Translations under genes and position numbers: made by a program
Part shown: positions 2,877 through 37,795 of the stretch, in pieces
How the letters are laid out: each line of letters begins with the position of its first letter
Position numbering within the stretch: the first letter of the stretch is position 1
Notes under the pieces: generated by a model
What the model was told of the DNA's origin: nothing
Databases searched by the model: none
What the model saw: only the letters and a program-made list of their open reading frames with translations
DNA from: Centroscyllium fabricii
Lineage: Eukaryota
Direction: 5' to 3'
DNA: 64,000 bases
Assembly (NCBI GenBank): GCA_051313645.2
Contig: JBNRSN020000016.1
Span: 89,280,001-89,344,000 of the forward strand

Positions 2877-3002
2877 TTCACTAAGCTATACTTGGCAACA
2901 CTTGTCATATGAGTTACTTCAATCCATCTACTGAGAGCAAAATGATTTCTTGATCTGCCTTTGCCAGGAATCCAACAATCTTGAGTTAACTCTAGATGGG
3001 AT

Positions 3003-4120: not shown

Positions 4121-4193
4121 GAATAACAACAGAAAACGCTGGAAAAACTCAGCAGGCCAGGGCAGCATCCGTGGAGAGAGAAACAGAGTTAAT
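4121..4193. mobile_element. Penelope-derived repeat, left part (continues at 9651-9675), host of Harbinger element 1
   Basis: Near-identical to the arm at ~2669-2739; resumes GTTTCAGGTCGATGACCTTTCG after the insertion. Confidence 0.85.
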
Positions 4194-4907
4194 GGGGGGT
4201 AATTTCATGTCCCCATCAGGCGGGGTTTTGGGCGGCCATGACGTGAAAATAGGAACATTTTGGTTCCTGCCCCAAGCTGCCGAATCCCTGCCAGTTTTGG
4301 ATTTTCGGCCAGCCTGTTTCCCCGCCCCGAATCTTTCCCGCCAGCCGCCGGCGGGAATGGCTGTTAAGGTCGTTAAGGGCCCTTAATTGGTATGTGTAAT
4401 GCAATTTTATTATTATTAATTCAACTTTATTGTCATTATACAATGTACAAGTACATGAACAATGAAATGTGATCTTGCAAGCTCCCAAGAGTCCAGCAAA
4501 GCCGCTGCATCTGTGCGCGCCGCCATTCCATCTTTCCATCATTCTGACAATCTTCAGCCAACCGTCCCTCCCTGGGGCTCCTTTCATGACCTTCTGCACC
4601 CTTATCAATTTTCAGCTGTTTCCCACCCAAACGCCGCCGCCCTAAACCCCGTTCAGTGAAACCTAGCGGGAGCACACTCGGATTGCTGAGTATCTGTGGC
4701 AGGTCCCTCATTGAAGGCTCACATTTAATCAGCCATCATTGGCATTCGCAACCACATTGTTGTGTCAGGCCTGGGGATACTTGCAACAGGCTTCACCACA
4801 CCTGTGAAAGGTTGCATCCTCACACACTTCTGCAGTGTGACCTGGGAAAGTCCTCTGACTTCCCCCACTCAGTCAGTGCTTCCTCAGCCGAGGCTGCCAG
4901 CACAGCC

Positions 4908-5965
4908 ATGGGAGGCCTTTTCTTCCTTCCCTTCTTGGCATTAGATGATCTCCGGCAGGAGCAGTTGTGACGACAGGAGGAGCAGCAGCAGCAGCCACAC
5001 TAGGAGCCACACGCTCCTGCGGACCCTCCGGAGGCAGCACGGGCCAGAAGGCATCAGTGCATGGAAGGCCGTCGCCGTAGAACATACCCCCAAACAGGGT
5101 CTACAGAGTCAGAGCCACCTACCTCAACATGAGTGAGCGTCGGTGCCAAAGGCAGCTCCGACTTTCCCAAGAGGTAGTCACAGACATCTGCACCATGCTG
5201 CAGTAACAGCTGGAGCCCAGAACACCAGATAGACATGCCTTACCAGTGGCCCTCAAAGTCACCACTGCACTCAACTTTTTTGCCTCGGGTTCATTCCAGG
5301 GATCATCAGCAGACATCAGCGGCATCTCCCAGTCGGCCACACACACTTGCATTGCGTAGGTAACCAATGCCCTCTTTGCCCTCGCCCACAATTTCATCCA
5401 TTTCACCAGGGAGCGTGCAAGTGTGAGGGTGCGAGCGATTGGAATTGCTCGTCTGGCAGGCTTCCCAAGGGTGCAGGGCATCATTGACTGCACACATGTG
5501 GCTCTTAGGGCACCCACCGACAACCCAGTTGCTTTTGTCAACCGCAAGGGCTTCCATTCGCTCAATGTTCAACTGGTGTGTGATCACAACAAGGAGATTT
5601 TGCATGTGTGTGCCAAGTACCCTGGCAGTTGCCATGACTCCTTCGTCATGTGCCACTCAACCTTGCCTGCGCTCTTCACACCGCCAGATGAAATTCTGGG
5701 ATGGCCACTTGGAGACAAGGGCTATCCCCTCAGGACTTGGCTCATGATGCCGGTCAGGAGGCCAGCCAATGAGGTGGAGGAGAACTACAACTCCAGACAC
5801 ATCTCCACCAGATGCATTATAGAGCACACCATCGGCTTGCTCAAGATGCGTTTCAGATGCTTGGACAGATCAGGTGGACCCCTGCAACACTCCCCAGCCA
5901 GGGTCTCCAAAATGGTAGTGATTTGCTGCCAACATCACAACATGGCACAGTGGTTTAGAGCTTAG
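4908..5965 (+). pseudogene. Harbinger (HARBI1-like) DDE transposase pseudogene
   Basis: Motifs [30 protein letters not shown]; in-frame stops near 4968, 5204 and 5357; acidic C-terminus deleted relative to element 2. Confidence 0.9.
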
Positions 5966-7180
5966 CCGCTGCAAACCTGCTTTAAGGCCAAGGAGCAGCA
6001 TCACATGCAATAATGTACACAGAAACATTAAACGTTCCCATTCTAATATAAGGTTTAATTAGGAAATACAACAACCATGGGCAAATGAATGGTTGTTGGA
6101 GTGAAGACCAGCACTTATCAATCAGTCCATTTATTTGGTCCCAGCCATCACACCTAGCTACATGCAGCTTGGAAAGGTCATATATTCATTCTGAGCAATG
6201 GAGAAGTTCAGCCAGTCCAGTTTTGAGATTGCACTTTGCTTTCCATTGTCCCTCAGGGTCTCCCACTGTCACATGGTGCCCCTCCCTTTTCAACTGTGCC
6301 AGACATTCACAGCTTCCATCTGCTTCGGTGATGCGGTCATGCGCCAGACTCCACAAAGGCTCTGCTCATGCTCGCTACGGACTCCTCCATTCACTTCACA
6401 CTCACAGCTACCTCAGAGACAAAACCTGCCAGACACGCCTGCATCTCTGCATAGAGTTCCATCAGCTGTACTCTGCGGATGGATCCAGAGGCACAGGGTC
6501 CACATGCAGCTGAGCTAAGCTGGCAGAGTCCTGCACCCTCCGACTAGGACTCTGCAATGCTGTCCCTGTCTCCACAATCTGCTGAGGCTCACTTGTGATT
6601 TGTGATTCACCCGGTGACAATCCTAAGCTATGTCCCGAGGGTCCCACCGAGGTGGGAGTATCTGCGCTGGTGCTGGGTGGCATCAGTGCTGCTGACGCTA
6701 CGCCCTCACAGGTGGGAGCTTCCTCTGAGGATTGCATGTGGCCAGGCTCTTCAGCACAAACAGTGGCCAGGTGCTCTGCCGATGGTCCTGTGGGGCAGTA
6801 AAAGAGGAAGTTAGAGATGTGTTACCAAGGTTACATTCACATACCATTCAGCAGATGAGCAGAAGTCCATCTGAAGTGCTTTTATATTCATTGTGGCAGA
6901 CTCATGTGATAGCTATGATAGAGATATTAAGCAATTCTGTCACCAGCTTCCAAAGCGGACCCTGCCTCTCCCTCACCCACTCCCGACGCTTCTCCATCGC
7001 CCACAATATCCATAACTCCCTCATCCCAGGTGGTCAGGTGTATGATGGAGGGGGGGCCTCCTCTGGTCCTGGCTCTCTCCCGCTGGTTGCTGGCTGTCTT
7101 TTCCTGCAATGAGGGAGACAAGTGGAGGATGAGTGAGAAGGAAGGAGTTTGTGCAGCGAGTGAACAGCAAATGGAGTAAA

Positions 7181-7329
7181 AACTATATTATCTGCACACT
7201 TGAAATGTACTTTATTGTATGCAACCCATGTAACTTATTTGCACTACTCTCGGGAGCGGCGAGTCAACGTTTCGTTGTATTGTACTAGTACACTGCAATG
7301 ACAATAAAATTGAATTGAATTGAATTGAA
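7181..7329 (+). mobile_element. Rex1/Babar 3' end fragment
   Basis: Homologous to the 3' UTR of the LINE at 11108-11250; AATAAA followed by (TTGAA)n tail. Confidence 0.8.
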
Positions 7330-7595
7330 GATAGTTGGAGGGAGAGAAAGTTAGAGTAAGGCTGCAAGACCAAGGGCTCTCCCTGTGCGCTGTCAGATGT
7401 GCTGCAAGCATCAGAGTGAGAGGGAGTGTGAGGGCTGCATGGTCGAAAAGGCCTGTGAATGTGAGCATAGAGAGGGAATGGGTAAGGGTGCTTGGATGTG
7501 ATAGTGAAGTGGGATGTGGAGGAAGGGAGTGGTGAAGCTAAGTGCTGGTGAGGAGAGGTGAGTGGGATCAGATTGAGGATGATGGAAAATTAATA

Positions 7596-8402
7596 CAGGT
7601 TGAGCACCGGCAATAAGTTAACCGGAAAGCCGGCAGCTTCAGTCGTCCGCCATAAATTGCCCCGACTGCCCTGCGCATGTGCAAAATGGCCACCGTGATT
7701 GATGCTTCGGCGAATGATCTGCGTATGCGTTGCCGAACGGCAAACGCATGCGCAGATCATTCAAAACGGCTGCCGGAGGTTTTGAATGATCTACACATGC
7801 GTGACTCCGAGAAGAGCACGGAAAGGTAAAGGCGGCCGTTGTGTCAAAGCCGGGCGGAGAGTTTGAAGAATGAGGAGACTGAGCCGCTGGACTGGCGGCC
7901 TGGGCTGGAATGGGTTCCTCGGGCGCGCCCTAGAGCCCAGCTTCTCTTTAAAGGGATCACGCGGTGCCGCCTGGCTTCAAATGTCCCGGGTCCCCGCAAA
8001 CCCGCCGCAAGCTCTTCACTGCCGGCCGGCTAACTGGGCGCAGCCCCGCCACCCCTTCCCTCCGGGAGCGGCGGCCAGTTTGCTGCTGTACTTTGTGCCG
8101 GATCTCTGTCCCGGGTCTGGGCTTCGGCCCCGCTCGGTTGGAAATCTCCGCTCAGAGTCACGGGGAGAGAGAAAGGAATCGGGCATTTGATTAAAAAGTG
8201 GTGTGCCTCATTTTTAATTAAAAAAAGAACGAGTTTCGAATTCTTCAAAACTTCGCGGCGGCCACTTCCAATGTTATGCGCATGCGCGTGGCCATTTTGA
8301 ATGGTGTGCGCATGTGCACTGGCCGGCTTCATTCTTCCAGTTTTTTCGGTATACCGGCGCAGGCCGAGTCCCGCCCGTGCCGGTATAATGGTGCTCAACC
8401 TG
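7596..8402. mobile_element. Tc1/mariner Tigger/pogo-like MITE
   Basis: 13-bp perfect TIR CAGGTTGAGCACC; TA TSD (7594-7595, 8403-8404). Confidence 0.85.
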
Positions 8403-8684
8403 TACTTACTTTAGCAGTGCGGTGAAGGTCATGGAATCTCTTCCTGCACTGGAGCCAGGACCCTGCTCTTACTCCCAAGGAGGTCACCCCCTCAGCGTCC
8501 TGCAGCCAAGCAGTCTTGGTCTGGGAGGGAGGTCTCTTCCTCCCTGAGGAGGGGACGAGAACCTTCCTGTGGGCCCTAGCCCCCTCTAATAAGGCATCCA
8601 ACGAAGCCTTGTTGAATTTAGGCGCGGGTCGTCCCCTCCCGCTGCCCGATGCAGCTTCCTCGCGCTGTGCCATCCTACTTGAGC

Positions 8685-9405
8685 GTTCAAGGTTCAAGGT
8701 AAATTTATTGTCACATGTTTAAATACAATTTAGACAGTGAAAAGCTTACTGCTACCCGAACGCACCGTGCAACAACCGCGCAACAAGGACATTAAGCTGC
8801 CCGGCACGAACGAGCCCGCAAGACGTCAGCCATTCTCCGGCGCCATCATCGTGGGTCCCGTTCCTGCTCTGGCTACTCAATTGATGGTAATTGTCCTCTA
8901 CCGCTCCGTCAACTCGCTCTGCCGCGGTTTCCTCCGTGGTTACTCTCTGCCCGACACCATGTCGGCTCCCCCGAATCCACGGAGCTCCGAACTCCGGGTG
9001 CAGCATCCTGAGGCCTGGGGCCTAGCTTTTCTCCAAGCGCCATCCCAGCTCCCCTGAGCTCCGAACTCCGGACCAAGGCCTGGGGCCTAGCTCTCTTGCA
9101 GGCGCTCAACACAGGCTCCCCGGAACGCCAAGCCAAGGCCATCCCGACTCCCTGGAGGTCCGAACTCTGGACCGAGGCCTGGGGCCTAGCACGCGGCCCG
9201 GCGCACGTCCCGGCTCCCTCTGAGTCCTCCGAGCTCCCAGCTCACTCCCGTTGGCCGAACTGGTGCAGCGTCCTGAGGCCGAACTACGCCCCGCATCCCA
9301 CCGGGCTCCCTCCCGGCGCCGCCGACGTCAGATGGCGGCCGACCAAAGCAAATTAACTTCACGTAGAGGTGTAGAGGTGCGGGCGCCAGCCAGCCGGAAC
9401 CGGAA
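8685..9405 (-). mobile_element. Non-autonomous retroelement with Rex1-type tail, inserted in the 5' UTR of the Harbinger Myb gene
   Basis: Absent at the equivalent position of element 2; minus strand ends AATAAATTTACCTTGAACCTTGAAC; GC-rich body with three internal repeats of GGCCTGGGGCCTAGC. Confidence 0.6.
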
Positions 9406-10118
9406 CTTAGCAGAAGGCTGAGGAGTGCGGGAGGCGAGCTGTGTGCATCAAAAGAAACGGGAATGCTGACGTCATATTGTGCGACTTTCTGACTGGAAAT
9501 CCTAGATTGAGAAGGCTTCCCGCAGGCGGGGATTTAACTGGGCACTTAGCCAAAAATACCGTGGGAAACGCAGACACTTTAGCCGGCAGCCCCAAAACCC
9601 GCCACACCCGAAACCCGGCAATTCCCCGCACTTCCAGCAAAATCCCCCCCAATGTTTCAGGTCGATGACCTTTCGCCCTTAATGTACAACCCTAATTTAG
9701 CTCAACATTATTAATCCTTTCCTCCCCTTCTTGCCATGCCTCCCCTCCAATCATAATGAGACACTTCACTCCTTCTGCTTACACTCACACCCTCAAAGCC
9801 TACTATTGCTCTCACAACTACTTCCACTTCTATTCTATTCTATATTTCTATGTTTCTTGGCCACACTTGCTGCTGCTCCCTGTCACCATGCACATGATGC
9901 TAAGCTGTCCCAAACAGTTTGAAAACACAATAGGGCACAGACATACCCACTGCCACTCTTTCTGTCGAAGGAGCGAGCATGGCCATCCCTAGTTGCCCTG
10001 GATACAACTAGCACTTGCTTTCTAGGACAGTTAAGAGTCAACCATGTTGGTGTGGGACTGGAGTCATATATAGCCTAGACTGGGTAAGAATGGCAGGTTT
10101 CCTTCCCTAAAAGATATT

Positions 10119-10963: not shown

Positions 10964-11107
10964 ATTAGTCAACTAATTGGATTTTTTATGACAATCTGAC
11001 AGCCTCATGGTCACTTCTTTTTACTGCCCACAGGGCAATGTGGGTGTAATCCATGACTTGGAAGAATCCTGTAAACTGAGTGAACCCGAGGACCCGATCC
11101 TGCTATA

Positions 11108-13485
11108 TTCAATTCAATTCAATTCAAGTTTTATTGTCATTGCAGAGTACTAGTACAATACAACGAGACGAAGACTCGACGCTCCCAAGAGTAGTGCAAA
11201 TAAATTACATGCAAATTGCATACAGTAAAGTACATTTTCAGGTGTGCAGGTACCGGAGTTTATTTTTAGAGTTCAGGAGGCTGACAGCCTTGGGGAAGAA
11301 GCTGTTCTGAAATCTAGTCGTGCGGGTACGAATTGATCTGTAGCGTCTCCCGGAGGGCAGGGGGGCGAACAGACTGTGGCTGGGGTGTGTGGGGTTTTTA
11401 ATAATGTTCAGAGACCTCCGTAGGCAGCGTTTGAGGTAGATGCTTTCAATTGACGGTAGCTGGGTACCGGTGATTCGTTGGGCAGTTTTGACTACCCGCT
11501 ACAGGGTCTTCCGGTCCGAGATGGTGCAATTTCCATACCAGGCTGTGATGCAGCTTGTCAGTATGCTTTCGATTGTGCAGCAGTAGAAGTTGGAGAGGAT
11601 GCCGGATGACAGCCTGGCTTTCTTCAGCTTCCTTAGGAAGTACAGGTGCTGTTGGGCTTTCTTAACCAGAGAGGAGGTGTTTAGTGACCAGGAGAGGTCT
11701 TCCGATATGTGGACCCCGAGGAACTTGAAGCTGGACACCCTTTCCACCTCAGCCCCTTGGATGAAGATGGGGGTGTGTCTTCTGCTTTCAGTCCTCTGGA
11801 AGTCCACTATGATCTCCTTAGTTTTCTTGGTGTTCAGTGCCAGGTTGTTGTCGGCACACCATCCCACAAGGCGCTGGATCTCATCCCTGTAGGCTGACTC
11901 ATCGTTGTTTTTGATCTGGCCAACCACCGTGGTGTCGTCCGCAAACTTGTTGATCGTGTTGGAGCCATGGACAGCCGCACAGTCGTGAGTGAAGAGGGAG
12001 TAGAGGAGTGGGCTCAGCACACAGTCTTGTGGGGCCCCCGTGTTCAGGGTAAGGGTGGGGGGTGGTGAGGTTGCCTAACTTCACAGACTGTGGTCTGTTG
12101 GATAGGAAGTCCAGGGTCCAGTTGCAGAGGGAGGTGTTCAGGCCGAGGGTGAGGAGTTTGTTAGACAATTTGCTGGGGACGATGGTGTTGAATGCTGAGC
12201 TGTAGTCAATAAACAGCATTCTGATATACGTATCTTTGCTATCCAGGTGGTTTAGTGCAGAGTGAAGAGCCGTAGTGATAGCATCTTCCATAGATCTATT
12301 CCCTCGGTAGGCGAACTGGTATTGGTCCAGGTCGGCGGGGACGCTGGCTTTGATGTGGGCCAGGACCAGCTGCTCAAAACACTTCATGATAATGGGTGTA
12401 AGTGTGACAGGGCGGTAGTCGTTCAGGCACGTCACAGCCGTTTTCTTGGGCACAGGGATGATGGTGGCGGTCTTGAAGCAGGTAGGGACAGCTGCCTTCG
12501 CCAGTGACAGGTTGAAGATGTCAGTGAAGACTTCAGCCAGTTGGTCGGCACATTCTTTGAGTGCCCGGCCGGGGATGCCATCAGGACCCACGGCCTTCCG
12601 TGCGTTCACTCCACGTAGAGCACCTCTTACATCGGAGGAGGACAGTGTTAATGGCTGGTCTTCCGGGGATTGCAGGACTTTGGTGGCAGGCTCCCTGTTG
12701 TCCCTGTCGAAGCGAGCATAGAAGTTGTTGAGTTCCTCCAGTAGGGAGGCATCGCTGGTTGGGGGGCTGGTGTTTCTGCACTTGTAGTCCGTGATGGACT
12801 GTATGCCTTGCCACATACGTCGAGGGTCCGAGTTGTTGTGAAAGTGTTCCTCTATCTTCAGTGTCTGATTTCATTTGGCAGACCTGATACCCCTCTTTAG
12901 GTTGGCCCTGGCTGTGCTGTAAGCCGCCACATCCCCAGATTTGAAAGCTGTGTCACGCGCCTTCAGCAGCGAGCGGACCTCCCCGTTCATCCAGGGTTTC
13001 TGGTTGGGGAATGTCTTGATGGTTTTTTGGGTAGTGACCACCTCGACACAGCTGTTGATGTACAAAAGCACTGTGGATGTGTATTCCTCGATGTCCGTGT
13101 GAGCGAACATGTTCCATTCAGTGCGTTCGAAGCAGTCTTGTAGCTCTGAGACTGCCCGTTCTGGCCATACCCTGACTGATTTGGCTGAAGCTTTCACCCT
13201 TTTGATGAGTGGTTTGTATGCTGGGGCGAGGAACAGTGAAAGGTGGTCGGAATTCCCGAGGTGGGGGCACGGGATGGCTTTGTAAGCCTCTGCGATGTTG
13301 GTGTAGACCTGGTCCAGCGTGTTCTCGCCCCCCGTGGGGCAGGAGACATTCTTGTGAAATTTCGGTAGTACGGATTTGAGGTTAGCGTGGTTGAAGTCCC
13401 CCGCCACGATAAAGGCTCCTTCCGGATGCACGGTCTGCTGCTCGCTGATGGCCCTGTGAAGATCCTTGAGTGCCAGTTTGGCATA
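11108..13485 (-). mobile_element. Rex1/Babar non-LTR retrotransposon, 5'-truncated (APE endonuclease end plus RT)
   Basis: VAGDFN, LGNSDH (endonuclease); [26 protein letters not shown] (RT); in-frame stops at 12871 and 11499 and one frameshift near 12055; (TTGAA)n tail. Confidence 0.9.
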
Positions 13486-14147: not shown

Positions 14148-14149
14148 AG

Positions 14150-16555
14150 GACGTTGAGGCAGAGTAGTAGGCACAGGCAGGTATTGCAGGTGTCCCCTGT
14201 GGCCATCCCCCTCTCAAACAGATATACCGTTTTGGATATTTTTGAGGGAAATGGCTTATTGGGGGAAGACAGCAGCAGCCAACTTCCTTACACCGTGGGT
14301 GGTTCTGCTGCACAGGACGGGAGGAAAAGGAGTGGGAGAGCTATAGTAATAGGGGATTCAATTGTAAGGGGAATAGATAGGCGTTTCTGCGGCCGCAAAC
14401 GAGACTCCAGGATGGTATGTTGCCTCCCTGGTGCAAGGGTCAAGGATGTCTCGGAGCGGCTGCAGAGTATTTTGGAAGGGGAGGGTGAAAAGCCAGTTGT
14501 CATGGTACCAACGATATAGGTAAAAACTGGGATGAGGTCCTAAAGGAGTAAAGCAAAAGTGGTGGTCAGAGAAATCAAGGATTTAAATGAAACGTGGCAA
14601 CAGTAAATAATAATTCTAAAAGGTCTAAGTGTGTTAAAAAAAAAACAAGCCTGAAGGCTTTGTGTGTTAATGCGAGGAGCAGTCGTAATGAGGTGGATGA
14701 ATTAGCTGCGCAAATAGAAATAAACAGATATGATATGATTGGGATTACAGAAACATGGCTCCAGGGTGACCAAGGCTGGGAACTCAACATCCAAGGGTAA
14801 TCAATATTCAGGAAAAACAGACAAAAAGGAAAAGGAGGTGGGGCAGCATTGTTGGTTAAAGAGGAGATTAACACAATTGTAATGGCCCTGTCACACCTTG
14901 ACGTTTTAGCCAGCGTATGCAAATTTGGCTAAAACGCTGGGTAACGTCGGATACGTTATGGGTACGTTTTGCATACGTTAAGAGCACGCTGGCATACGCT
15001 GGCAATAAGTTGCATACGTCGTTGTACTCCGAGTAAGTCGAGAAATTTTGAGCATGCACAAAATTTCTCGACGTACCTTGCGTATGATTCACACGTTCCG
15101 CATACGCTGGCCATACGTTGTAGGCACGTTAGGCGATCGTTGACACACGTCGACACACGTTACTTGTAAGTTAGTCATAAGTCAAAATACGTCGAGATAA
15201 TGTCTAGCGTACCCGGAACTTATTTCTAACCTATGAGTAACGTGCTTTGAACCTATGTGTAACATATCTCCAACGCATATTGACGTATTTGACGTCTTCC
15301 GGACGACCACAGAACTTATGCCCCTGTCATGCCCTGTCACACCTTGACGATTTAGCTAGCGTATGCCGACGTATCAAAATTTATCTAAAACGTCGGCGAT
15401 ACGCTGCCGCGCGCTATGCATACGTTAGACTATCGTTGGGCATAAGTTGTGAATGCCGACAACACGCTAAAGGCCCTGTCACACCTAGACGTTTTAGCCA
15501 GCGTATGCAAATTTGGCTAAAACGCTGAACTTTTGACCTTTTTTTTCAGTTTTGGGCGTATAATAGCGTATTCATAACGTATTGGACGTATAACGTATTA
15601 GTAACGTACACAGAGCGTATCAATAACTTACAGATAACTTATACCAACGAATGCTTAGCGTTCACAACTTATGCCCAACGATAGTCTAACGTATGCATAG
15701 CGGCAGCGTATCGCCGACGTTTTAGATAAATTTTGATAAATTGGAAAACGCTAGCTTAAATCGTCAAGGTGTGACAGGGCATGACAGGGGCAAGGTAATG
15801 TGTGTTCAACGATCGCCTAACGTGCCTACAACGTATGGCCAGCGTATGCGGAACGTATAAATCGTAACATTGATACGTCGTGATTTTTTGTGCATGCACA
15901 AAAAATCTCGACTTACTCGACATTTAACGACGTATACAACGTATGTCCAGCGTATGGCAACGTGCTCTTAACGTATGCATAACGTACCCATAACGTATCC
16001 GACGTAAACCAGCGTTTTAGCCAAATTTGCATACGCTGGCTAAATCGTCTAGGTGTGACAGGGCCTTTAGCATTCGTTGGTATAAGTTATCTGTAACTTA
16101 TCGAAACGTTCTGTGTACGTTACTAATACGTTATGCATACGTTATGCATACGTCCAACTCGTTATGAATACGCTATTATACGGCCAAAACTGAAAAAAAC
16201 ATCGATAGTTCAGCGTTTTAGCCAAATTTGCATACGCTGGCTAAAACGTCAAGGTGTGACAGGGCCATAAGGAAGGATATTAGCTCTGATGATGTGGAAT
16301 CTGTATGGGTAGTGCTGAGAAATACCATGCGGCAGAAAACGTTAGTGGGGGTTGTATACAGACCCCCAAACAGTAATGCGGAGGTTGGGGATGGCATTAA
16401 ATGGGAAATTAGAGAAGCGTGCAATAAGGGCACAGCAGTTATCATGGGTTACTTTAATCTACATATAGACTGGACTAACCAAATTAGTAACAAACTGTGG
16501 AGGAGGGATTTCTGGAGTGTATGCAGGATGGTTTCCTGGGCCAACATGTCGAGGA
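14150..16555 (+). mobile_element. CR1 LINE internal fragment (ORF1 esterase domain plus start of ORF2 endonuclease), interrupted by a MITE
   Basis: IVIGDSIVRGIDRRFCG..VCCLPGARVKDV (SGNH ORF1); ALCVNARS..IGITETWL; VGVVYRPPNS; coding continuity across 14883-16267. Confidence 0.88.
14883..16267. mobile_element. PIF/Harbinger-type MITE with long TIRs, containing an inverted copy of its own family (15471-16066)
   Basis: ~57-bp perfect TIR TGGCCCTGTCACACCTTGACGTTTTAGCCAGCGTATGCAAATTTGGCTAAAACGCTG; TAA TSD (14880-14882, 16268-16270); inner copy has TIR AGGCCCTGTCACACCTAGACG flanked by TAA/TTA. Confidence 0.88.
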
Positions 16556-16811
16556 ATATCGATGACATCAACCTGAAACGTTGGCCGGAATTTTGCCCTA
16601 ATGGCGGGGAACTGGCGGAGATTGGTCGGGGCGGGTTTTTGTCCCGCACGAATAAGTGCCTGCGTTTCCCACGCGATTTTCGTCTAACGACCCAATTAAT
16701 TCCCCGCCTGTGGGAAGCCTTCCCAATCACCGATTTCCAGTCAGAAAGTCGCACAATATGACGTCAGGATTCAGGTTTTCTTTAATAAACACAGCTCGCC
16801 TCCCGCACAGG

Positions 16812-18853
16812 ATGGCAGAGCGTGAGGGTGCTGCATTGGGCAGCGCGAGGGGACGACCCACCCCCAAATTTGATGATGCTCCCTCGACGCATTGCTCGAG
16901 GGGGCAACTACCCATAGGGAGGTTCTCTTCCCCTCCTCAGGGAGGAAGAGACCTCCCTCACAGACTAAGGCTGCATGGCAGAAGGTGGCTGAGGGGGTCA
17001 GCTCTTTGGGCACAACACCCCGGTCCTGGCTGCAGTGTCGCAAGCGATTGCATGACCTTCATCGCACTGCCAGAGAAGTATTCATTTCCCCTCACTCTCA
17101 ATCTCATCCCCCTCACCACAACTTATCTTCACCGCTCCCTTCCTCCACATCCCACTTGCCCATCACCTCCAAGCAACCTTACCCATTCCCTCTCTATTTA
17201 TGCTCACACTCACGGTCCTTTCCCTCCATTCAGCCCTCATACTCCCTCGCACTCTCATGCTTGCTGCACATCTGGCACCACACAGGGAGAGCCTTTGGTC
17301 TTGCAGGCTTACTGCATCTTTGACACCCTGCAGCAAACTTTGCTGCTCACTCGCTGCAACAACTCCTTCCTTCTCACTCAACCTCCACTTCTCTCCCTCA
17401 TTGCAGGAAAAGACAGCCGCCAACAAGCGGCACAGCGCCGGGACCGGAGGAGGACCCCCCACCATCCAGCAGCTCACCACCTGGGAGGAGGCAGTGCTAG
17501 AACTCGTTGGGGAGGGGCAAGCCCCGGGAGTGGGTGACAGCGAGGCAGGCATGCAATCTCGAGCTGGTGACAGCATGGTTTAATTATTTCTCTCACAAGT
17601 AACATATGAGACTGGCACAATGAATGTAAAAGCACTGCAGAGGCAGCTCTGCTCAGCTCCTGAATGCTATCTGTATGTAACCTTGCTGACATATCTCTAA
17701 CCTCTGCCTTTACTGCCCCACAGGCCTAGCCGCAGCTGGACGGCCAACCAGAGATCAGCACCAGGCCGCCCCTGTCCAGTCCTCAGAGGAACCTGCCACC
17801 TCTGAGGGTGCACCATCAGCACCACAGACTCCACCCGGCACCAGCGCAGATATTAGCACCTCGGTGGGCCCCCCTAGAGCTACATATGACTTGTCACCGG
17901 GTGATTCAGACAGCACTAGTGAGCCTCAGCAGAATGTGGAGACAGGGACAGCAGTGCAGGGTCCTAGTCGAAGGGCGCAGGACACTGCCAGCTTAGCTGA
18001 GCTGCATGTCGACACAGCGCCTTTGGATCCATCAGGCAGAGGACACATGATGGGACTCCAGACACAGATGCAGGCGTCTCTGACAGGTTTTGTCTCCCAG
18101 GTAGCTGCAAGTGTCATGCCAAAGGAGGAGTCTGTCACAAGCATGAGAAGTGACCTTGCGGAGTCAGTGTCGCATGATCGCATCACCATGGAAAGGATGG
18201 CAACCACCATGGAAAGGATGGCAACCACCATGGAAAGGATGGCAACCACCATGTAAAGGATGGCGACCACCATGGAAAGGATAGTGACCGTGGACGAGAG
18301 GATGGCCACGGCAATCGAGCACATAAGTTGCCAGTCTTTCGAAGACATGGGCACTGTCCACAATAGATACACATCTCTTGAGCAGCGAGTGGCATCTATT
18401 GAGCAGATGACCCAGACCTTCGTGGAAGTCGCTCTCATTAGGACTTCCACTGCAGAAATGGGTCCCCATGGCCCCCCTGAAGTGCAGCAAGGTGCTGTCC
18501 AGCCACTTGCTGGTGCTGAGGGGGAGGTGACCCATGAGAGGGAGGTTGGTGGTGCAGCTGAACGAAGTGGGGGCTCCTCTCCAAGCGCTCCCATGTCCAC
18601 ACCACTGCAGAGCCCTCGGTCAGAGGCCCGCCGGAGTCCCCATGCACCTGAGATGGAAGTCTCATACCCTGCCCAGCCACAGGAGCAGCAGACTGGTAGC
18701 GAGCCCCCACAGGCTCACCGCCCCAGAGGACGACCGCCAAAGGTGTCCAGACAGGAGCAGCAGGGCACTCAGCAGGGGGCCTCCACATCTGCTGACACCA
18801 CAGGGATAGCACCACGTAGGAGCACTCGCAAAAGAACAATTAAGCACCCTTAG
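16812..18853 (+). pseudogene. Harbinger Myb/SANT partner gene; exons 16812-17074, 17407-17566, 17724-18853
   Basis: Myb/SANT exon 1 with a 1-nt deletion; donor damaged (GAAGTA vs GTAAGTA in element 1); exon 3 phase consistent; one TAA at 18254; AT-hook-like RPRGRPPK and basic C-terminus. Confidence 0.82.
18188..18290 (+). repeat. 21-bp coding tandem repeat (MERMATT heptads)
   Basis: ATGGAAAGGATGGCAACCACC, about 4.5 copies. Confidence 0.9.
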
Positions 18854-20090
18854 GCACAACGGGAGTCACTTGGGTGTTAGTGTAACAGTCAGTCGGTGTC
18901 CAAAGCAGTGGTCAGACAGCAGACCACTGCAGGTGCCACCTGATGCAGTTGTCATGTCTGACATCTTGCGAATGGCCCTTCCACATTGAAACCTTATGCA
19001 AGCTGGACAGCAATCGGGCAGGCCTCACAGATATGCATGGATGCAGACGCAACATGGCAGAAGGACTTACAGCAAGACGAATGAGGTTCAATAACAGACT
19101 ACAGCTCAATGGTTAACAGTGAAGGTCCTTGAAACCGGCCTACCTTCATGGTGACGCACACCAGCGAACAGAGGGACTGTATGACCGATGTGTGGTCCAA
19201 AAGATGACCAGGTTAACTGAACAAACCACCTGATGTTTTCGCTACACCAGCAAACACGCCTCAGGGCTGAACTTTAACACGAACAAAACTTTAAAAAGAT
19301 GGAGGTGGGCAAAGAAAAGATGGGCCAACTGGCCAAAGTACCCACGCATCCAACATCATCTGGCTGCAACTGGTCCCTCACAGCACCTGACCCTGATGGA
19401 ATGGCCAAGGAGCCATGGTGCCAGCATGCCTCAGCTCTCACACATCAAACAAGATCAGGTGGGTGAAGAACCACCAGACATTGACCCTCACCGCCCTCTA
19501 CAGCTCCTGCCTCATGTGCGGGTGCGTTGCCCTGGTTTGTCAGAATATGTGTCACTCTTGAAAAGGGAGGGGCAGCACGTGAGAGGGGGGAACATGATTG
19601 ACAATGGATATGAAGTTGCATGCTTAAAACTGGACTGGCTGAGGTGCATTTTGACCATTTCAACCTGCATGTCTGCAGCTGAAATGCCTGGGACATCATT
19701 AATGCAGTGATTCATAAGTGCTGGTCATCAGTTGAACAACCATGCATGTGGCCATGTTTGCTTAATGTCTTTACTAAACAGCATGTTGCAGTTGCAACCT
19801 TTAATGTTTCTGTGTTCATTATTGCATGTGATGGATGGATGTTTGGGTGGGACCATGTTCATCAAAGAAATGTGTGGTGCGTCAGGGGCGCGGGTGCATG
19901 CGCGAGCGCAGAAAGCCTTCACAGGCACTTGGCAGCCCCAGAAGCACACTCCCCCAACACCCCCCCCCCCCACAGAGATGTCGTTACAGTAGTGGGACTC
20001 ATGCAGGTATGAGCTGTGGAACTGATTGGAGTGTGTCATTGAGGATGCGCTGTTAGGATGAGGAGAGTAACACAAGCTGGCTTGAGTAGT

Positions 20091-21389
20091 CTAAGAAAAT
20101 CGTGCAAGGATGAGCTCCATCCTTGCTTGCCAGCCAGCAACGTTCTCGCGTAATGGTGGCGCTGGCTGTGGTCGAGCGGCAGCAACCCCGTCCTCCTCCT
20201 CCTCTACCTCGTCCTCCTCCTCCTCTACCTCGTCCTCCTCCTCCTCTTCCTCCTCCTCCTCCTCCTCTTCCTCCTCCTCCTGTTCCTCTTCATCTGAGGA
20301 CGGTATGCGAGGAGGCAGGTCTTGGTCAGGAGGTTGCAAGCCACGGCGCTGGGCCATGTTGTGAAGTTGACAGCATACCACTACCATTCTGGAGACCCTG
20401 GCTGGGATGAATTGCAGGGCTCCACCTGATCATTCCAAGCATCTGAAACACATCTTGAGCAAGCCTATGGTATGCTCTATAATGCTTCTGGTGGAGATGT
20501 GTGTGGAGTTGTAGTTCTCCTCAGCCTCATTGGCTGGCCTCCTGACCGGCGTCATGAGCCAAGTCCTGAGGGGATAGCCCTTGTCTCCAAGTAGCCACCC
20601 CAGAAGCTGGTCCGGCGGTGTGAAGAGCGCAGGCAAGGTTGATTGGCACAGGACATAGGAGTCATGGCAGCTGCCAGGGTACCTGGCACACACATGCAAA
20701 ATATCCTTGTTGTGGTCACACACCAGTTGAACATTGAGTGAATGGAAGCCCTTGTGGTTGAGAAAAGCTACTGGGTTGTCATTGGGTGCCCTAAGGGCCA
20801 CATGTGTGCAGTCAATGATGCCCTGTACCCTTGGGAAGCCTGCCAGACGAGCCATTCCAATCGCTCGGGCCCTCACACTTGCGCGATCTGTGGTAAAATG
20901 GATGAAATTGTGGGCACGGGCAAAGAGGGCATTGGTTACCTGGGTGATGCAGGAGTGTGCGGCCGACTGGGAGATTCCGCTGATGCCGGCTGCTGATCCC
21001 TGGAATGAGCCCGAGGCAAAGAAGTTGAGTGCAGTGGTGACTTTCAGGGCCACTGGTAAGGCATGTCTACATGGTGTGCTGGGCTCCAGCTCTTGCTGCA
21101 GCATGGCACAGATGTCTGTGACTCCCTCTCGGGAAAGTCGGAGTCGTCTTTGGCACCGCCGCTCACTCATGTTGAGGTAGGTGGCTCGGACTCTGTAGAC
21201 CCTGTTTGGAGGGTATCTTCTGTGGCGACGGCCTTGGATGCGCCGATGCCTTCTGGCCCATGCTGCCCCCGGAGGGTTCGCAGGAGCATCAGGCTCCTGG
21301 TGTGGCTGGTGCTGGTGCTGCTGTAGCCGCATCTGCTCCTGGTAGAGATCATGTAATCCCAAGAAGGGAAGGAATAAAATGGCTCCCAT
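20091..21389 (-). pseudogene. Harbinger (HARBI1-like) DDE transposase, ~432 codons, single premature stop
   Basis: IIDCTH / LLGDKGY / IIEHTIG catalytic motifs; TGA at 20430-20432 where element 1 has AGA (LDRSGG); same frame continues through a poly-Glu tract to LARFS*. Confidence 0.92.
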
Positions 21390-21919
21390 GGCTGTGCTGG
21401 CAGCCTCGGCTGAGGAAGCACTGAGTGAGGGGGGTAAGTGAGAGGGCTTTCCCAGGTCACACTGAAGAAGTTTTTGAGGATTCAACTTTCCACAGGTGTG
21501 CTGAAGCCTGTTGCAAATATCCCCAGGATTGAGAGAACAATGTGTTTGCGCAAGCGAATGATGGCTGATTAAATGTGAGCCTTCATTGAGTGACCGGACA
21601 CAGATACTCAGCAGTCCCACTGAGTTCACACAAGGGTTTCACCTGACAGGGTTTAGCTTGGCGGGTTTTGTGCGTGAACCACATGAAAATTGCTAAGGGA
21701 CCTTAAAATGGAATTACTGATGCCAATTAAGGGCCCTTAACGACCTTAACAAGCATCCCCGCCGGGCGCCGGCGGGAAAGATTCGGGGCGGGAAAAAAGC
21801 CCGCACAAAAATTCAAATCCGGTGGGGAATGGGCGGGCTTGGGCGGGAACCAAAATGTTCTAATTTTCATCTCCCGCCCGCCCAAAACCCCGCCTGACGG
21901 GGACATGAAAATTACCCCC

Positions 21920-22025
21920 GTTAACTCTGTTTCTCTCTCCACTGATGCTGCCTGACCTGCTGCGTTTTTCCAGCATTTTCTGTTGTTATTTCGGATTTCC
22001 AGCATCCGCAGTATTTTGCTGTCAT
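21920..22025. mobile_element. Penelope-derived repeat, right part (left part 16560-16582), host of Harbinger element 2
   Basis: ACCTGAAACGTT | GTTAACTCTGTTTCTCTCTCCACTGATGCTGCC..GCAGTATTTTGCTGTCAT. Confidence 0.85.
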
Positions 22026-22541
22026 AAAAATGACAGAATTTGGGAGTCAGATTGATTGCTGATCACACCAAAACTGAGGTGTGAGTACTCCCCCTGGGGT
22101 GAGAGGGTCAATCTCACAACACCTTGAATTCACGCTGGTGCACTGGAACTCAAAGTGCAAAGCTTCATTTAAAACATTTCCAAGTGGTCCATTGGATCTC
22201 CTCAGAACTTTGAAAAGTAAATTTATAGCCTTTTTAACATTAAGAGGAAGCATATCCTGCCAAAGACTCTCTCAGAGAGCAGAGCTTTGTATAGGCAGTC
22301 ATACATTGCACTGCCAGCAACAAGGTGGTAAGAGTCAGTGGTCCATTCTTCAAGTATCGGTCTGGAAATAGTACCTTCAGTATAACTACAGTCTTACAGT
22401 CATAAATCTCATCCTTCTTTCTGACTTTGCTGATTAATCATTATTCTGGATTCTTTCTTGGTTTAGCTTTAAAAAAAACTGTGATGCATGACTTAATTTT
22501 CACATCCTAACCTTTAGCTCAATCACAACTTATTTAAAATA

Positions 22542-23172
22542 CAGGTACACAATCCTTTATCTGAACACCTTGGGACCGGGCGGTCTTCGGTTTTCGGATA
22601 ATTTTGGTTTTCGGGATGGTGCCCAGTGCTCCTGCGCATTGCCGTGTTGGCGGCCGATTGCGCCTCTGAAACGGTAGGAGATTGTGAGCTAACAACAGAA
22701 AACGCTGGAGAAACTCAGCAGGCCAGGCAGCATCGGTGGAGAGAGGAGCAGAGTTGACGTTTCAGGTGGAAGACCTTTTGCCATTGATACCGGGGCTCGG
22801 GTGCAGCGCTGTGCGAGGGAGGCCGCAGCGGCGGCTCACGGAATGGCAGACTGTCCTCTCCCATTAAAGGGGAGGGGGCTAGCGCGGCTACGGCTAGAGC
22901 CTCGCGGGTCCGCCGAGGGACCGGGAGCCGCAGAACGAGCCCGGTACTCGGGGGAAGTGCCGGGCTCAGCTGAGGGAGGGCTCACCCCGCAGTTTTTACA
23001 TTTCCTATCGAGCAGTGCAAGGGATGGAATGGGAATGTAATACTTACTACACCAGTATGATTCAAATTAGCTTTCGAAATGGATCAGGTTTGGCGCAACT
23101 TGGGTCATTTTGAAATTTCGGTTTTTGGAGCTTTTCGATTTTTGGAGTTGCGGATAAAGGATTGTGTACCTG
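22542..23172. mobile_element. Tigger/pogo-like MITE containing a Penelope-repeat arm (22691-22780)
   Basis: 20-bp perfect TIR CAGGTACACAATCCTTTATC; TA TSD. Confidence 0.88.
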
Positions 23173-23846
23173 TACTACCAATCTCCAGTGACATTGTTCA
23201 CAGTAAGTCAGACGATGTGCTGTTTTAGAACAACAGGAGCATTATACCACATCTACACACGGGGTAGATTTTTATCTTCATCACCGAGACAGTAATGTGG
23301 GCGGTGGGGGTCCAGATTGGACACCCTTTGCAGAATTTGCCTGATTTTCATGGCATTGAAATGAATGGAGTGAAGATTAGGTGGGTGCTGTAAAAGCAGT
23401 GAATATGTAAATTACCTGCCCTTTCTTTTCAGGCCACAAAGTCAAATTGCTGAAAGTAAGAAGTCACACAACACCTGGTTATAGTCCAACAGTTTTATAA
23501 GCACACTTTGACTCACTTAGTGGGTGCTGCTATTAGTGAAGAAAGTTTGCAGATTGACAGGAGCTTGTGAATTCCTTACTCCTGGTCAAATGAAACAACA
23601 TCCTTTCTTTCTTTAAAAAAAAATAGAGTGAAACCTGTAAACCACAGACACCGAAGGGACTGGCCTTAAGCACTCCTTTTTTGCTGGTGTCTTTATTTTC
23701 AAAATGTAGGTACTGTAAAAATATTTCCAATAATTTGAAGAACCAGCTGAGATTATGATCAGTGCCTAATCAGCTCCAACAATACTAAGGACTTATGTTT
23801 GGAAGCAGAAATAACAACAAATTGATGTGCCAAGTACAGTATCTTC

Positions 23847-24558
23847 CGGGTCCATGTGGGGTTGGGTGTGTACACATCCTCTGGGTCTGTGTGGGTCGGG
23901 TGTGTACACATCCTCTGGGTCTGTGTGGGTCGGGTGTGTACACATCCTCTGGGTCTGTGTGGGGTCGGGTGTGGACACATCCTCTGAGTCTGTGTGGGTC
24001 GGGTGTGTACACATCCTCTGGGTCCACGTGGGGTCGGGTGTGGACACATCCTCTGGGTCTGTGTGGGGTCGGGTGTGGACACATCCTCTGAGTCTGTGTG
24101 GGGTCGGGTGTGCACACATCCTCTGGGTCTGTGTGGGGTCGGGTGTGTACACATCCTCTGGGTCCACGTGGGGTCGGGTGTGGACACATCCTCTGGGTCC
24201 ACGTGGGGTCAGGTGTGGACACATCCTCTGGGTCTGTGTGGGGTCGGGTGTGGACACATCCTCTGGGTCTGTGTGGGGTCAGGTGTGTACACATCCTCTG
24301 GGTCCACGTGGGGTCGGGTGTGGACACATCCTTTGGGTCCATGTGGGGTCAGGTGTGGACACATCCTCTGGGTCTGTGTGGGGTCAGGTGTGGACACATC
24401 CTCTGGGTCTGTGTGTGGTCGGGTGTGTACACATCCTCTGGGTCTGTGTGGGGTCGGGTGTGTACACATCCTCTGGGTCTGTGTGGGGTCGGGTGTGTAC
24501 ACATCCTCTGGGTCCACGTGGGGTCGGGTGTGTACACATCCTCTGGGTCTGTGTGGGG
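23847..24558. repeat. 35-bp minisatellite, about 20 copies
   Basis: Unit GGGTCTGTGTGGGGTCGGGTGTGTACACATCCTCT with 34-bp and CCAC/GGAC variants. Confidence 0.95.
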
Positions 24559-25227
24559 CTGCTTTTGGAAGCGGGGACAATGGCTGCAGGGGTGATTCAA
24601 ATCACAATACTGGCATGAACAAAAGGAAATCCAGTAACAATCCATCAGTCATCATGATCTTCAGACTCACATACAGAACATTATTTGAATATTTTAGTGT
24701 AACGTCAGGCTGTGTTCATATTTTAAGATGTGAAAGCGTTTGGTGCATTCAAGGAGTGTTCATTTATACAGGTTTCACTGTACTATTGCTGCGTTAAAGT
24801 GCTATGTATGAAATGTGCAGGGTATGCACTAGACCTACTTTACATAATATATCTGTACATCCCTTTGACTTTTAACTCCAAAGTGCAACTATTAGCCTTC
24901 ATCCTGCAAATAATACATTCAAACTCGTCTTTACTTTTTATGAAAATTGTATGACATTACAGTCACAAAGAGGAAGGAAAATCGATGGGGAAGTAGCTTT
25001 ATTCAAACTATTCGCACCGTTAAAAGAAGAAATTGTATTATTCAAAGCTTTGTGGGAAATTGAAACATTCCTGCTACCATTGCACATCAGGTCTCTTTCC
25101 TTGCTAGGCAGTTCTGATGACATTTATTATGGAGAACACCACAAGCGATCCCATTGCAAACTGCAAGGAAGGAGGTGTCTTCAGGCTGACCTGAGGGCCA
25201 TTTTGAAGCAGGATCACAGGAAACCAT

Positions 25228-25457
25228 CTATGACAGCAAAATACTGTGGATGCTGAAAATCCGAAACAACGACAGAAAACACTGGAGAAACTCAGCAGGC
25301 CCGGCAGCATCGGTGGAGAGAGGAACAGAGTGAACGTTTCCGGTCGATGACCTTTCTCCAGTTCTGAAGAAAGGTCATCAACCTGAAACGTCAACTCTGT
25401 TTCTCTCTCCACCGATGCTGCCTGGCCTGCTGAGTTTCTCCAGCGTTTTCTGTTGTT
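25228..25457. mobile_element. Penelope-derived palindromic short element
   Basis: Long inverted repeat; perfect 15-bp TSD ATCACAGGAAACCAT (25213-25227, 25458-25472). Confidence 0.88.
25360..25396 (+). ncRNA. Minimal type I hammerhead ribozyme motif
   Basis: Stem I AGTT/AACT; core CTGAAGA; extra A; stem II AGGT-CATCA-ACCT; GAAAC-GTC with palindromic ACGT stem III; predicted cleavage after C25392. Confidence 0.7.
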
Positions 25458-26647
25458 ATCACAGGAAACCATGCTGCAAACAGCTGCCAGGCAGCTCAGT
25501 AGCTGATTTGAAGTCCTACCTTGTGAGACTGCCCAAACTTATTTCACACAAGACCTTTACACGAACAGTGTGAGGAAAAATCCATTCAGCCAATCTAGGC
25601 TGGGCTCAATTCCAGATTCTAAACATTAAAAAAAAAAGCCAATATTGTAAGTCAATCAAATCTTGAACCACTCCCAAAACATGTTTTTTTTCTTTACTTG
25701 AAATTACAATGAATCCCTTTAATGAGAATAATTCCATTAGGTAAGGAGTTAGTCAGCAACATATGAAAATATCTTTTTAGCATGCTGGCCAACATGTTTG
25801 AGTAGTGTAGTTATACCCATTTTTGTGGTTTCTGCATCACAACAATCCAAAAATAACAGTCTGACTCGGGTTCTATTACAACTCTAAAGCAGAGCAGTGC
25901 GAGACCTCTCGGAGGAGTTCATCTCGCATTGCTTTGGCTTGACATCACATGTGCTATAACTCCAGCACAATGTTTTGCCAAGCTTAAGAAGTGCTTAAAG
26001 CAGTTACTGGATCACTAGGACATTTTATAAACCTAAGCAGAGCTTATTTAAATATTTTGAGAGGGTGGGTACTCTCCCCATTTAAATTTGTGCCAGGAGT
26101 GGCAGTCTGCACGTTTGCAAAGAGCTCTCTCCTAGCCAGGAAATTCCAATTTCACAGCCAGGCAGCATAAACAAGCTGCAACCAGTGGCAAATAGATCCT
26201 CTAACTACTGACTTAAAGATTTTATATAAATATATATATATTTACAATAAACAATCAACAATAGGTTATACTACCAATAATACCAAGGTCTACTATTTTA
26301 TAACTTGAAAATTTTTTTTAGCTTCGAATTTTTAATTTCACTTTATTAAAAGAGGTGTACAAAATTATGAGGGGCATAGATAGGGTAGATAGAAAGGATC
26401 TTTTTCCCTGAGTAGAGGGATCAATAACAAGGGGGCACAGTTTAAAGGTACGGGGCAGGAGGTTGAGGGGATTTGAGGAAGAACTTTTTCACCCAGAGGG
26501 TGGTTGGAATCTGGAACTCACCCACTGAAAGGGTGGTAGAGGCAGGAACCCTCACAACATTCAAGAAGCATTTAGATGAGCACTTGAACTGCCATAGCAA
26601 ACAAGGCTACGGACCAAGTGCTACAAAGTGGGATTAGAATAGACTGG

Positions 26648-27680
26648 AATAATAACAGAAAACGCTGGAGAAACTCAGCAGGCCAGGCAGCATTGATGGA
26701 GAGAGAAACAGAGTTAATGGGGGGAATTTTCTGGAAGGGCGGGAACCTGGTGGGGATTGGTCTGGGCGGCTGCCGGTCCCGCCCGCCCAAACAGCTGGGA
26801 AGCCCGCGCAATTTTAGGTTAATGAGGTTGTTAAATCCCCGTCGGAGGTAATTAGTTGAATCCAGTCGGGCTGCAGCAGAGCTGCTAGCACTTTGATTGA
26901 CAGTTCCAGCACTGGTTGTTGTCAGTTCCCATGGTAACACTCCACTGTGACATCACAGTGGAGTGGAGCCAATGGGAAAGGCCAAGTGCTGGTGACTGAC
27001 AGGTGGGTGGGCGGGCTCCGAATCCCTCACAGCCGGTGCAAGCTGTGAGGCCATTGTGAGAACTGAGATTGCTCAGTTTCTGGTCAGAGCTGATACTGAA
27101 GGCAGAATGGAGTTACTATCTCCTCTAAGGTGCTGAAGGCATGCCAAGCATTCGGCAGCATGTCCTTCAGACCTTAAAGGAGAAAGTAATAAATTCAGGA
27201 AGTCACACACCAGGTTATAGTGCAAAAGTTATAAGCAGCGCTGTGCTCCCGCTGGGTTTTACCCAGCGGGGTTTAAGGTGGCGGGGTTAGGGCGGGAAAC
27301 ACGGCAAAATGGCTGAGGGCCCTTAAAATGGCATTAAAGATGCCAATTAAGGGCCCTTAATGAGGTGACAACCCATCCCCGCCGGTCGGTGGCGGGAAGG
27401 TTTCGGGGCGGGGAATCGGGAAAATGAGAAAACGGCGGGGAGGGGCGGGACCCGCCGGTTCTGCTATTTTGCCGGCCGGGCCGCCCAAAACCCCGCCTCA
27501 CGGGGACATGAAAATTCCCCCCAATGTTTCAGGTCGATGACCTTTCTTCTGAAGAAAGGTCATCGACCTGAAACATTAACTCTGTTTCTCTCTCCACTGA
27601 TGCTGCCTGGCCAGCTGAGTTTCTCTGGCGTTTTCTGTTATTATTTCAGATTTCCAGCATCTGCAGTATTTTGCTATCGC
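26648..27680. mobile_element. Penelope-derived palindromic element, host of Harbinger MITE 3
   Basis: 15-bp TSD ATTAGMATAGACTGG (26633-26647, 27681-27695); hammerhead core CTGAAGA..GAAAC at 27549-27574. Confidence 0.85.
26719..27522. mobile_element. Harbinger MITE 3, related to elements 1 and 2
   Basis: 13-bp perfect TIR GGGGGGAATTTTC; TSD AAT (26716-26718, 27523-27525); ~250-bp subterminal region homologous to 21660-21919. Confidence 0.9.
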
Positions 27681-37749: not shown

Positions 37750-37795
37750 ACTTGCACTAATTCAACATATTAGGGAACATAATGTAGGAAAATAC

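Follow-up and report, generated by a model that had tools for sequence, protein, structure and literature searches.

What brings three transposons to the same trinucleotide of one short repeat? The question is raised by a 64-kb stretch of contig JBNRSN020000016.1 of Centroscyllium fabricii (the analysed stretch, hereafter the window), in which three elements of the PIF/Harbinger superfamily, here designated E1, E2 and E3, each interrupt a copy of an abundant retroelement-type repeat of about 129 bp (hereafter the host repeat). The explanation that we consider most probable is a site-specific PIF/Harbinger lineage with a long, sequence-specific target that is found almost solely inside this repeat.

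The junctions were read directly. All three elements split the host repeat at AGAGTT-AAY-GTTTCAGG, with the identical triplet and register in three cases of three: AGAGTT-AAT/GGGGGGT...CCCCCCC/AAT-GTTTCAGG for E1, GAAAC-GTT/GGCCGG...ACCCCC/GTT-AACTCTG for E2 and AGAGTT-AAT/GGGGGG...CCCCCC/AAT-GTTTCAGG for E3. In a register test, a script deleted each element plus a single triplet copy from its occupied site, and the emptied sites were then aligned to the uninterrupted copies of the repeat. They fall in register with six such copies (at 2728+, 2777-, 22747+, 25324+, 25381- and 27566-), each of which bears the triplet once. An earlier note on this DNA had reported an identical trinucleotide site with 3-bp duplications, and both the junctions and the alignment bear it out. 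Three of the nine host sites in the window are therefore occupied.

The site itself is restricted to the repeat. A 21-nt pattern of the site has six matches at up to three mismatches, against 0.02 expected from 100 shuffles of the window, and each half-site pattern has eight matches, all explained by the six intact and three split copies. The window holds 5076 AAY/RTT positions; if the triplet alone mattered, the chance of three hits on the nine host positions would be about 6e-9, that is (9/5076)^3, a post hoc figure. Exact matches to shorter motifs also occur outside the repeat, where the 5-mer TAAYG is found 227 times and the 7-mer TTAAYGT 20 times, with none occupied (Fisher p 1e-5 and 0.008, respectively, both post hoc). 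Because all these matches are free, the recognised sequence appears to be longer than 7 bp. The target, CAGAGTT-AAY-GTTTCAG, is not palindromic when read directly, yet insertions are found in both orientations. Mimicry of the target by the element ends was rejected, as the best local alignments between them span 9 nt and 12-45% of shuffles score equally. Since the element ends are unlike the target, it would not be read by the same contacts as the terminal inverted repeats (TIRs).

E1 and E2 can be assigned to PIF/Harbinger because they combine a two-gene layout, comprising a DDE_Tnp_4 transposase and a Myb/SANT-like second gene, with 3-bp duplications and short G-rich TIRs. E3 is a miniature inverted-repeat transposable element (MITE) whose TIRs match at 13 of 13 positions, while those of E1 and E2 are decayed. 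The assignment of all three elements to Harbinger in the earlier note therefore stands. Both autonomous copies are decayed in their genes as well, with the E1 transposase in pieces and a stop ahead of the last segment of the E2 transposase. By BLAST, E1 and E2 share 72-88% identity in aligned blocks and are set apart by large insertions in their interiors; the likeness of E3 to them is confined to about 200-290 bp at one end, where identity is about 72%. This end is hereafter called the A-end. A protein database search found 202 relatives of the transposase, and most of the 120 listed are named "putative nuclease HARBI1"; the nearest are shark and ray entries of that name, at most 62% identical among the matches listed (47-62% for the best-scoring ones). 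The usual Harbinger duplication triplet is TWA, and the AAY found here departs from that rule. No further Harbinger copy was detected in the window, either by BLAST of E1-E3 or with the conserved A-end 18-mer at up to three mismatches. A metagenome collection, scanned with the Harbinger A-end and with the left half-site joined to the triplet, yielded zero stretches in either case.

Several features of the element interiors were also recorded. E1 has nothing that corresponds to about 2 kb of E2; E2 contains a short coding-like tandem repeat at 18160-18300 (MERMATT units), and a long acidic run at 20110-20390, beside the transposase C-terminus. The interior of E1 (7189-7334) shares a 150-bp stretch with 11103-11252 (-) at 88.7% identity, which is probably another repeat nested in E1.

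To look beyond the window, its positions 26400-27900 were compared at 80% likeness with four public sequencing runs, used as assembled contigs and not as reads: X16 and X17 (organism F), X13 (organism D) and X14 (organism E). The comparison lists 15 of 535 joints and 24 of 3574 loose ends, and the counts of joints and loose ends given here are among those listed. In X16, 25 contigs (2+7+4+12) jump from the last one or two bases of the A-end (27521/27522) to 27574/27576, and 23 contigs (3+4+4+12) make the same jump in X17. Where the intervening letters are given they are G or GG, and the contigs, with the sequence ...CCCCC(C)-[G/A]TT-AACTCTG, place a Harbinger A-end on the opposite half-site; at 80% likeness they may derive from both E1/E2-type and E3-type copies. 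None of the 24 loose ends listed falls at an E3 terminus, whereas 395-1545 loose-ended contigs mark the boundaries of the host repeat. The contig joints support recurrence of the junction, short of a genome-wide count. The interior of E3 is covered and abundant in X16 and X17, while in X13 and X14 it has zero depth in 12 of 14 bins and a depth of at most 7 in the rest. All four runs, and with them three organisms, have the host repeat at high depth, so that it appears more widely distributed than the E3 MITE family.

Three insertions at one site could instead descend from one ancestral insertion copied together with its host repeat, whether by segmental duplication, composite retrotransposition or gene conversion. 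Such copying would suit E1 and E2, which lie the same way round in their hosts and show 72-88% identity, and the host arms offer only 88 columns, too few for an informative tree (pairwise identity is 83-95%, and the occupied arms are not mutual nearest relatives). It does not suit E3, which belongs to a different family and is reversed relative to its host, with the A-end on the GTTTCAGG side instead of the AACTCTG side as in E1 and E2. Nor does it account for the sequences beyond the repeat, which are unrelated among the three occupied copies (long interspersed nuclear element (LINE) endonuclease-like at host 2, another high-copy repeat at host 3), or for the different types of host, namely a short arm, a long arm and an inverted pair. 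The host 3 pair carries its own flanking duplication, an intact 3-bp duplication is found at each element, and 23-25 distinct contigs per run, among the joints listed, have the A-end next to the AACTCTG half, against the GTTTCAGG half for E3. Copying of one ancestral insertion is thus very unlikely. Given the reversed orientation, different family and unrelated host flanks of E3, the compared sequences make at least two independent events (E3 on one side, E1/E2 on the other) certain, and three very probable. The earlier note had correctly described unrelated host flanks and a flipped E3, as alignment of the copies and the A-end positions confirm, and had suggested that all three insertions are independent; this holds for E3 versus E1/E2, while separate events for E1 and E2 are only very probable. 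The contrast between AAT and AAC says little about independence, since at every junction the C sits in a CpG and may have decayed after insertion.

The strongest competitor, although an unlikely one in our judgement, is an ordinary preference for a short generic motif of about 7-9 bp around TTAAYG, the repeat being merely its commonest carrier, so that neither the repeat nor its ribozyme-like motif would matter as such. A 9-bp extended preference is described for plant PIF/Harbinger elements in the accessible text of PMC2836001, and site motifs of 9 nt or more, including every exact match of that length, are confined to the repeat within the window, so that a 9-bp rule predicts the same picture. 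It is less easily reconciled with the free matches outside the repeat (0/20 for TTAAYGT and 0/227 for TAAYG, against three repeat sites) and with the retention of one site by three subfamilies that differ by 12-28%. In practice, this explanation differs from that of a lineage with a long target only in the recognised length. Chance coincidence of three unrelated insertions has nothing in its favour except that the window was selected after the pattern had been seen; with the probability given above even for AAY/RTT triplets alone, and with the junction recurring in other contigs, it can practically be dismissed. Several points nevertheless weigh against a site-specific lineage with a long target. 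A generic 9-bp preference is inseparable from longer, repeat-specific recognition within 64 kb, and the in-window statistics are post hoc, with three elements in a window picked for the pattern. E1 and E2, sharing their orientation, are on their own compatible with one older event. At the joints with Harbinger ends the shorter side is 22-28 letters long, at 80% likeness, which the tool flags as weak, and up to two of the joint contigs per run may be E1 and E2 themselves. The count of flanks proposed in the earlier note could be approximated only, through the at least 25 (X16) and at least 23 (X17) contigs with the repeat junction.

The nature of the host repeat bears on what the target may be. 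Its bounds are marked by contig loose ends at 27547 (766, 680, 395 and 514 contigs in X16, X17, X13 and X14, respectively) and at 27675 (850, 821, 596 and 1545), past which the flanks in contigs are diverse (agreement 0.40-0.45). Copies of the repeat in the window are either single arms or members of one of three inverted pairs, a frequent form of it, and every pair has its own direct flanking duplication. For the pair of host copy 3, this duplication is ATAGACTGG (26639-26647 and 27687-27695), 9 bp or longer with imperfect matches, and contigs joining 26643 to 27703/27704 represent the outer repeat without the host copy 3 insertion. Variable length in the flanking duplications speaks for a retroelement and not for a DNA transposon; at 9-15 bp, and together with the inverted pairs, they fit a retroelement without being specific to Penelope. 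The inverted pairs (2636-2880, 25228-25459 and 26648-27686) each consist of one short and one long arm within a single duplication of 9-13 bp or more, and exactly one arm per pair reaches the CUGANGA core at the turn. This architecture hints at reverse transcription with a snap-back or template-switch step at the 5' end. The outer sequence at host copy 3 (26451-26647 and 27687-27776) is another very high-copy repeat, deep in four runs and three organisms, into which the pair was inserted.

On one strand, the repeat unit starts AGUU-CUGAAGA-A-AGGUC AUC GACCU-GAAA-C-GUU/AACU, which resembles the minimal hammerhead ribozymes of Penelope-like elements. According to the accessible text of PMC4209133, these lack helix III and have a helix I of 4-5 bp, an unpaired base 5' of helix II, a palindromic 15.2-16.2 pair and a conserved G10.1-C11.1 pair; they occur as thousands of dispersed truncated single copies, some of them paired close together on opposite strands. 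The motif in the repeat has the CUGANGA...GAAA...UH core with helices I and II, the unpaired base between positions 9 and 10.1, the palindromic 15.2-16.2 pair, no helix III and a 4-bp helix I. The consensus upstream of 27547 ends ...CCAG before TTCTGAAGA in all four runs, supplying the helix I strand, and most genomic copies carry GTT at the triplet (27575 is A>G in most contig depth). A descriptor that we wrote from the features printed in PMC4209133, not a curated model, has two matches in the window, both in the host repeat (25364-25392 + and 2737-2765 -), and none in 200 simulated windows. The conserved G10.1-C11.1 pair is replaced by A-U in the repeat (A-AGGUC...GACCU-G). Rfam gave no match at gathering score over the whole window, and no hammerhead family on two host copies at E values up to 10, where the sub-threshold matches were mostly to microRNA-precursor models. 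No open reading frame (ORF) for a Penelope reverse transcriptase or GIY-YIG domain adjoins any of the nine host copies, and no pseudo-long terminal repeat context was seen. A Penelope-type, minimal-hammerhead-like identity of the repeat is thus plausible by sequence, and the Penelope label is one that we infer; on the hammerhead reading, the duplicated GTT plausibly corresponds to the G16.2-U16.1-U17 triplet. The earlier proposal of a Penelope hammerhead accordingly survives in the features of the motif and the position of the triplet, and is not backed by an Rfam match, by the 10.1-11.1 pair or by a link to Penelope proteins. The inverted pairs at 25286-25439 and 27523-27577 match microRNA-precursor models, for example with 60 bits against a gathering score of 135; these sub-threshold matches were taken as noise from long hairpins.

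It had further been proposed that the insertions inactivate the ribozyme. Six of the nine arms are truncated before the CUGANGA core, and all three occupied arms are without it, prior to or irrespective of insertion: the sequence of host 1 stops at ...GAAAGGTC, that of host 2 begins within helix II, and in host 3 the sense strand of the occupied arm has CAGAAGA, this stretch being the turn of the inverted pair. Because the occupied copies already had no core, no ribozyme was inactivated at these sites, and the proposal does not apply to them. The transposon reads DNA, and dead fragments of the repeat are as good a target as complete copies.

If a site-specific lineage with a long target is responsible, it would comprise at least two diverged autonomous subfamilies (E1 and E2) and one MITE family (E3). 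The transposase and the Myb-like protein of the element would together cut AGAGTT/AAY/GTTTCAGG, duplicating the central AAY (GTT/ATT on the other strand), and the target would span the GAAAC core, the G16.2-U16.1-U17 triplet and, of helix I, the 3' strand. If these elements behave as characterised Harbingers do, the Myb-like protein would bring the transposase to the element ends and the complex would integrate by a 3-bp staggered cut, in either orientation. Recognition by the element's own proteins, the recognised length and a selective reason for the use of the ribozyme segment are parts of this scheme that we infer. Landing would probably be harmless to the host, as most repeat copies are dead 5'-truncated fragments, and the repeat may thus serve as a "safe harbour"; its ribozyme segment may be favoured as the most conserved part of it.

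A bolder scheme, which we regard as doubtful at best, makes an old elasmobranch Harbinger clade an obligate parasite of a Penelope-type family, tracking the hammerhead core and its cleavage triplet. Insertion into a complete copy would then create a discontinuous hammerhead with a helix III closed by the TIRs, possibly cutting transcripts at the element boundary, and the ribozyme would not be destroyed. It is suggested by the position of the insertion, where helix III is missing, by the duplication of G16.2-U16.1-U17 and by the pairing of the TIRs in read-through RNA. In a predicted RNA fold of the read-through strand across E3, the TIRs pair and the helix II hairpin forms; the predicted fold gives no hammerhead by itself.

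Table 1. Transposons, hammerhead-like motifs and host repeat copies in the window (positions are those of the window).
Feature	Position	Strand	Description	Basis
E1	4194..9650	+	5457-bp decayed autonomous Harbinger; A-end (GGGGGGTAATTTCATGTCCCC) at left	Junction reading, Pfam, BLAST
E1 target-site duplication	4191..4193 (left), 9651-9653 (right)	.	AAT at both	Junction reading
E1 transposase fragment	5423..5965	+	180-aa ORF; PF13359 DDE_Tnp_4, E 2.4e-36, profile positions 1-158 of 158	
E1 Myb/SANT-like second gene	8395..8697	-	100-aa ORF; PF13873 Myb_DNA-bind_5, E 1.1e-4, 22.5 bits vs cutoff 21.7	
E2	16583..21919	-	5337-bp Harbinger; reverse-complemented vs E1 in the window, same orientation relative to host copy	
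E2 target-site duplication	16580-16582, 21920-21922		GTT at both	Junction reading
E2 transposase ORF	20430..21629	-	399 aa; PF13359, E 1.6e-29; further C-terminal piece at 20091-20387 (-) past a stop	
E2 Myb/SANT-like second gene	16892..17323	+	PF13873, E 7.4e-7	
E3	26719..27522	-	804-bp non-coding Harbinger MITE; perfect 13-bp TIRs (GGGGGGAATTTTC); host-relative orientation opposite to E1/E2	
E3 target-site duplication	26716-26718, 27523-27525		AAT at both	Junction reading
Best complete minimal-hammerhead-like motif	25364..25392	+	CUGAAGA core through GUC; AGTT before and AACT after form a 4-bp helix I; in uninterrupted pair 25228-25459	
Minimal-hammerhead-like motif, CUGACGA	2737-2765	-	In uninterrupted pair 2636..2880	
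Minimal-hammerhead-like motif, intact arm of host copy 3	27549..27581	+	CTGAAGA-A-AGGTC ATC GACCT-GAAA-C-ATT/AACT; triplet ATT	
Host copy 1, left part, short-arm type	4122..4193	+	Remainder 9651-9675, ending ...GACCTTTCG; no CUGANGA	
Host copy 2, 5' piece on ribozyme-sense strand	16559..16582	+	Starts inside helix II, no CUGANGA; ends in GTT duplication copy; remainder 21920-22020, ending ...GCAGTATTTTGCT	
Host copy 3, inverted pair	26648..27675	.	Short arm 26648-26718 + 27523-27546 split by E3; intact long arm 27547-27675	
Uninterrupted inverted pair	25228-25459		Flanking duplication CACAGGAAACCAT, 13 bp	
Uninterrupted inverted pair	2636..2880	.	Flanking duplication CTAAGCTAT, 9 bp	
Uninterrupted single-arm copy	22676..22783	+	Triplet GAC	

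Other coding-like stretches were noted in the window. The only ORF with a reverse transcriptase domain (RVT_1, E 1.6e-12) lies in a LINE remnant at 11899-12816 (-) and adjoins no host copy. The LINE endonuclease-like stretch abutting host copy 2 (16228-16558, +) was identified by eye, its ORF having no Pfam match. An ORF of 1108 aa with many C2H2 zinc fingers extends over 37757-41083 (-).

Strict sequence-specific integration is rare among eukaryotic cut-and-paste transposons, and the one well-studied target-specific Harbinger has attracted interest as a tool. The zebrafish elements Harbinger3_DR and Harbinger3N_DR were reportedly treated by Kapitonov and Jurka in 2004. The integration target of Harbinger3_DR is a 15-bp consensus that forms a palindrome, AAACACCWGGTCTTT (Sinzelle et al. 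2008, cited in the accessible text of PMC3016246 and PMC2836001). More generally, the accessible part of PMC2836001 describes target preferences of 9 bp in plants and 15 bp in vertebrates for PIF/Harbinger, with a Myb-like protein that recruits the transposase to the ends and a 3-bp staggered integration at the preferred extended sequence. The strong target preference suggested in the earlier note, seen here as one site shared by three elements of three, is in line with the available text of both papers. Like Harbinger3_DR, the Harbinger lineage described here belongs to a vertebrate, encodes a transposase together with a Myb-like protein, makes 3-bp duplications and has non-autonomous derivatives, and its three copies in the window are all integrated into one extended sequence. 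It differs in that the target is non-palindromic, the duplicated triplet is AAY instead of CWG, and the site lies inside the repeat of another mobile element, on a hammerhead-like motif, and is common to several diverged subfamilies. The lineage would work like Harbinger3_DR, but with a different, non-palindromic target inside another mobile element. With plant PIF and mPing/Pong, as far as the accessible text of PMC2836001 describes them, it shares the superfamily, the two-protein system, the 3-bp duplication and an extended target preference, whereas the 9-bp pattern around TTA/TAA in plants is loose and genome-spread and the site here is a single one in one repeat family. On the side of the host repeat, the likeness to Penelope minimal hammerheads (PMC4209133 and PMC6155905, in their accessible parts) extends to the CUGANGA and GAAA cores, the absence of helix III, the unpaired base between A9 and 10.1, the C-G palindromic 15.2/16.2 pair, the 4-bp helix I and the many dispersed truncated copies with opposite-strand pairs. 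The repeat differs from them in an A-U instead of G-C at 10.1-11.1 and in a helix II of 5 bp instead of 6-8.

In keeping with the earlier note, which knew of no such description, no paper pairing Harbinger targeting with Penelope hammerheads was found in a literature search whose coverage excluded Repbase reports and most subscription journals. A second, unrelated target common to diverged subfamilies would offer a natural comparison for how a Harbinger transposase and Myb pair reads its target. In the annotation of shark genomes, composite Harbinger-in-repeat units could pass for a single family. Target-specific elements are known from other multicopy sequences, with R1/R2 in ribosomal DNA (rDNA), Dada in small nuclear RNA and transfer RNA genes and Pokey in 28S rDNA. 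Like them, the lineage described here would exploit a conserved multicopy sequence where its landing does no harm. Their targets are host genes, whereas here a Harbinger invades a segment of another selfish element, which would make it a clear case of one selfish element landing on the conserved functional motif of another.

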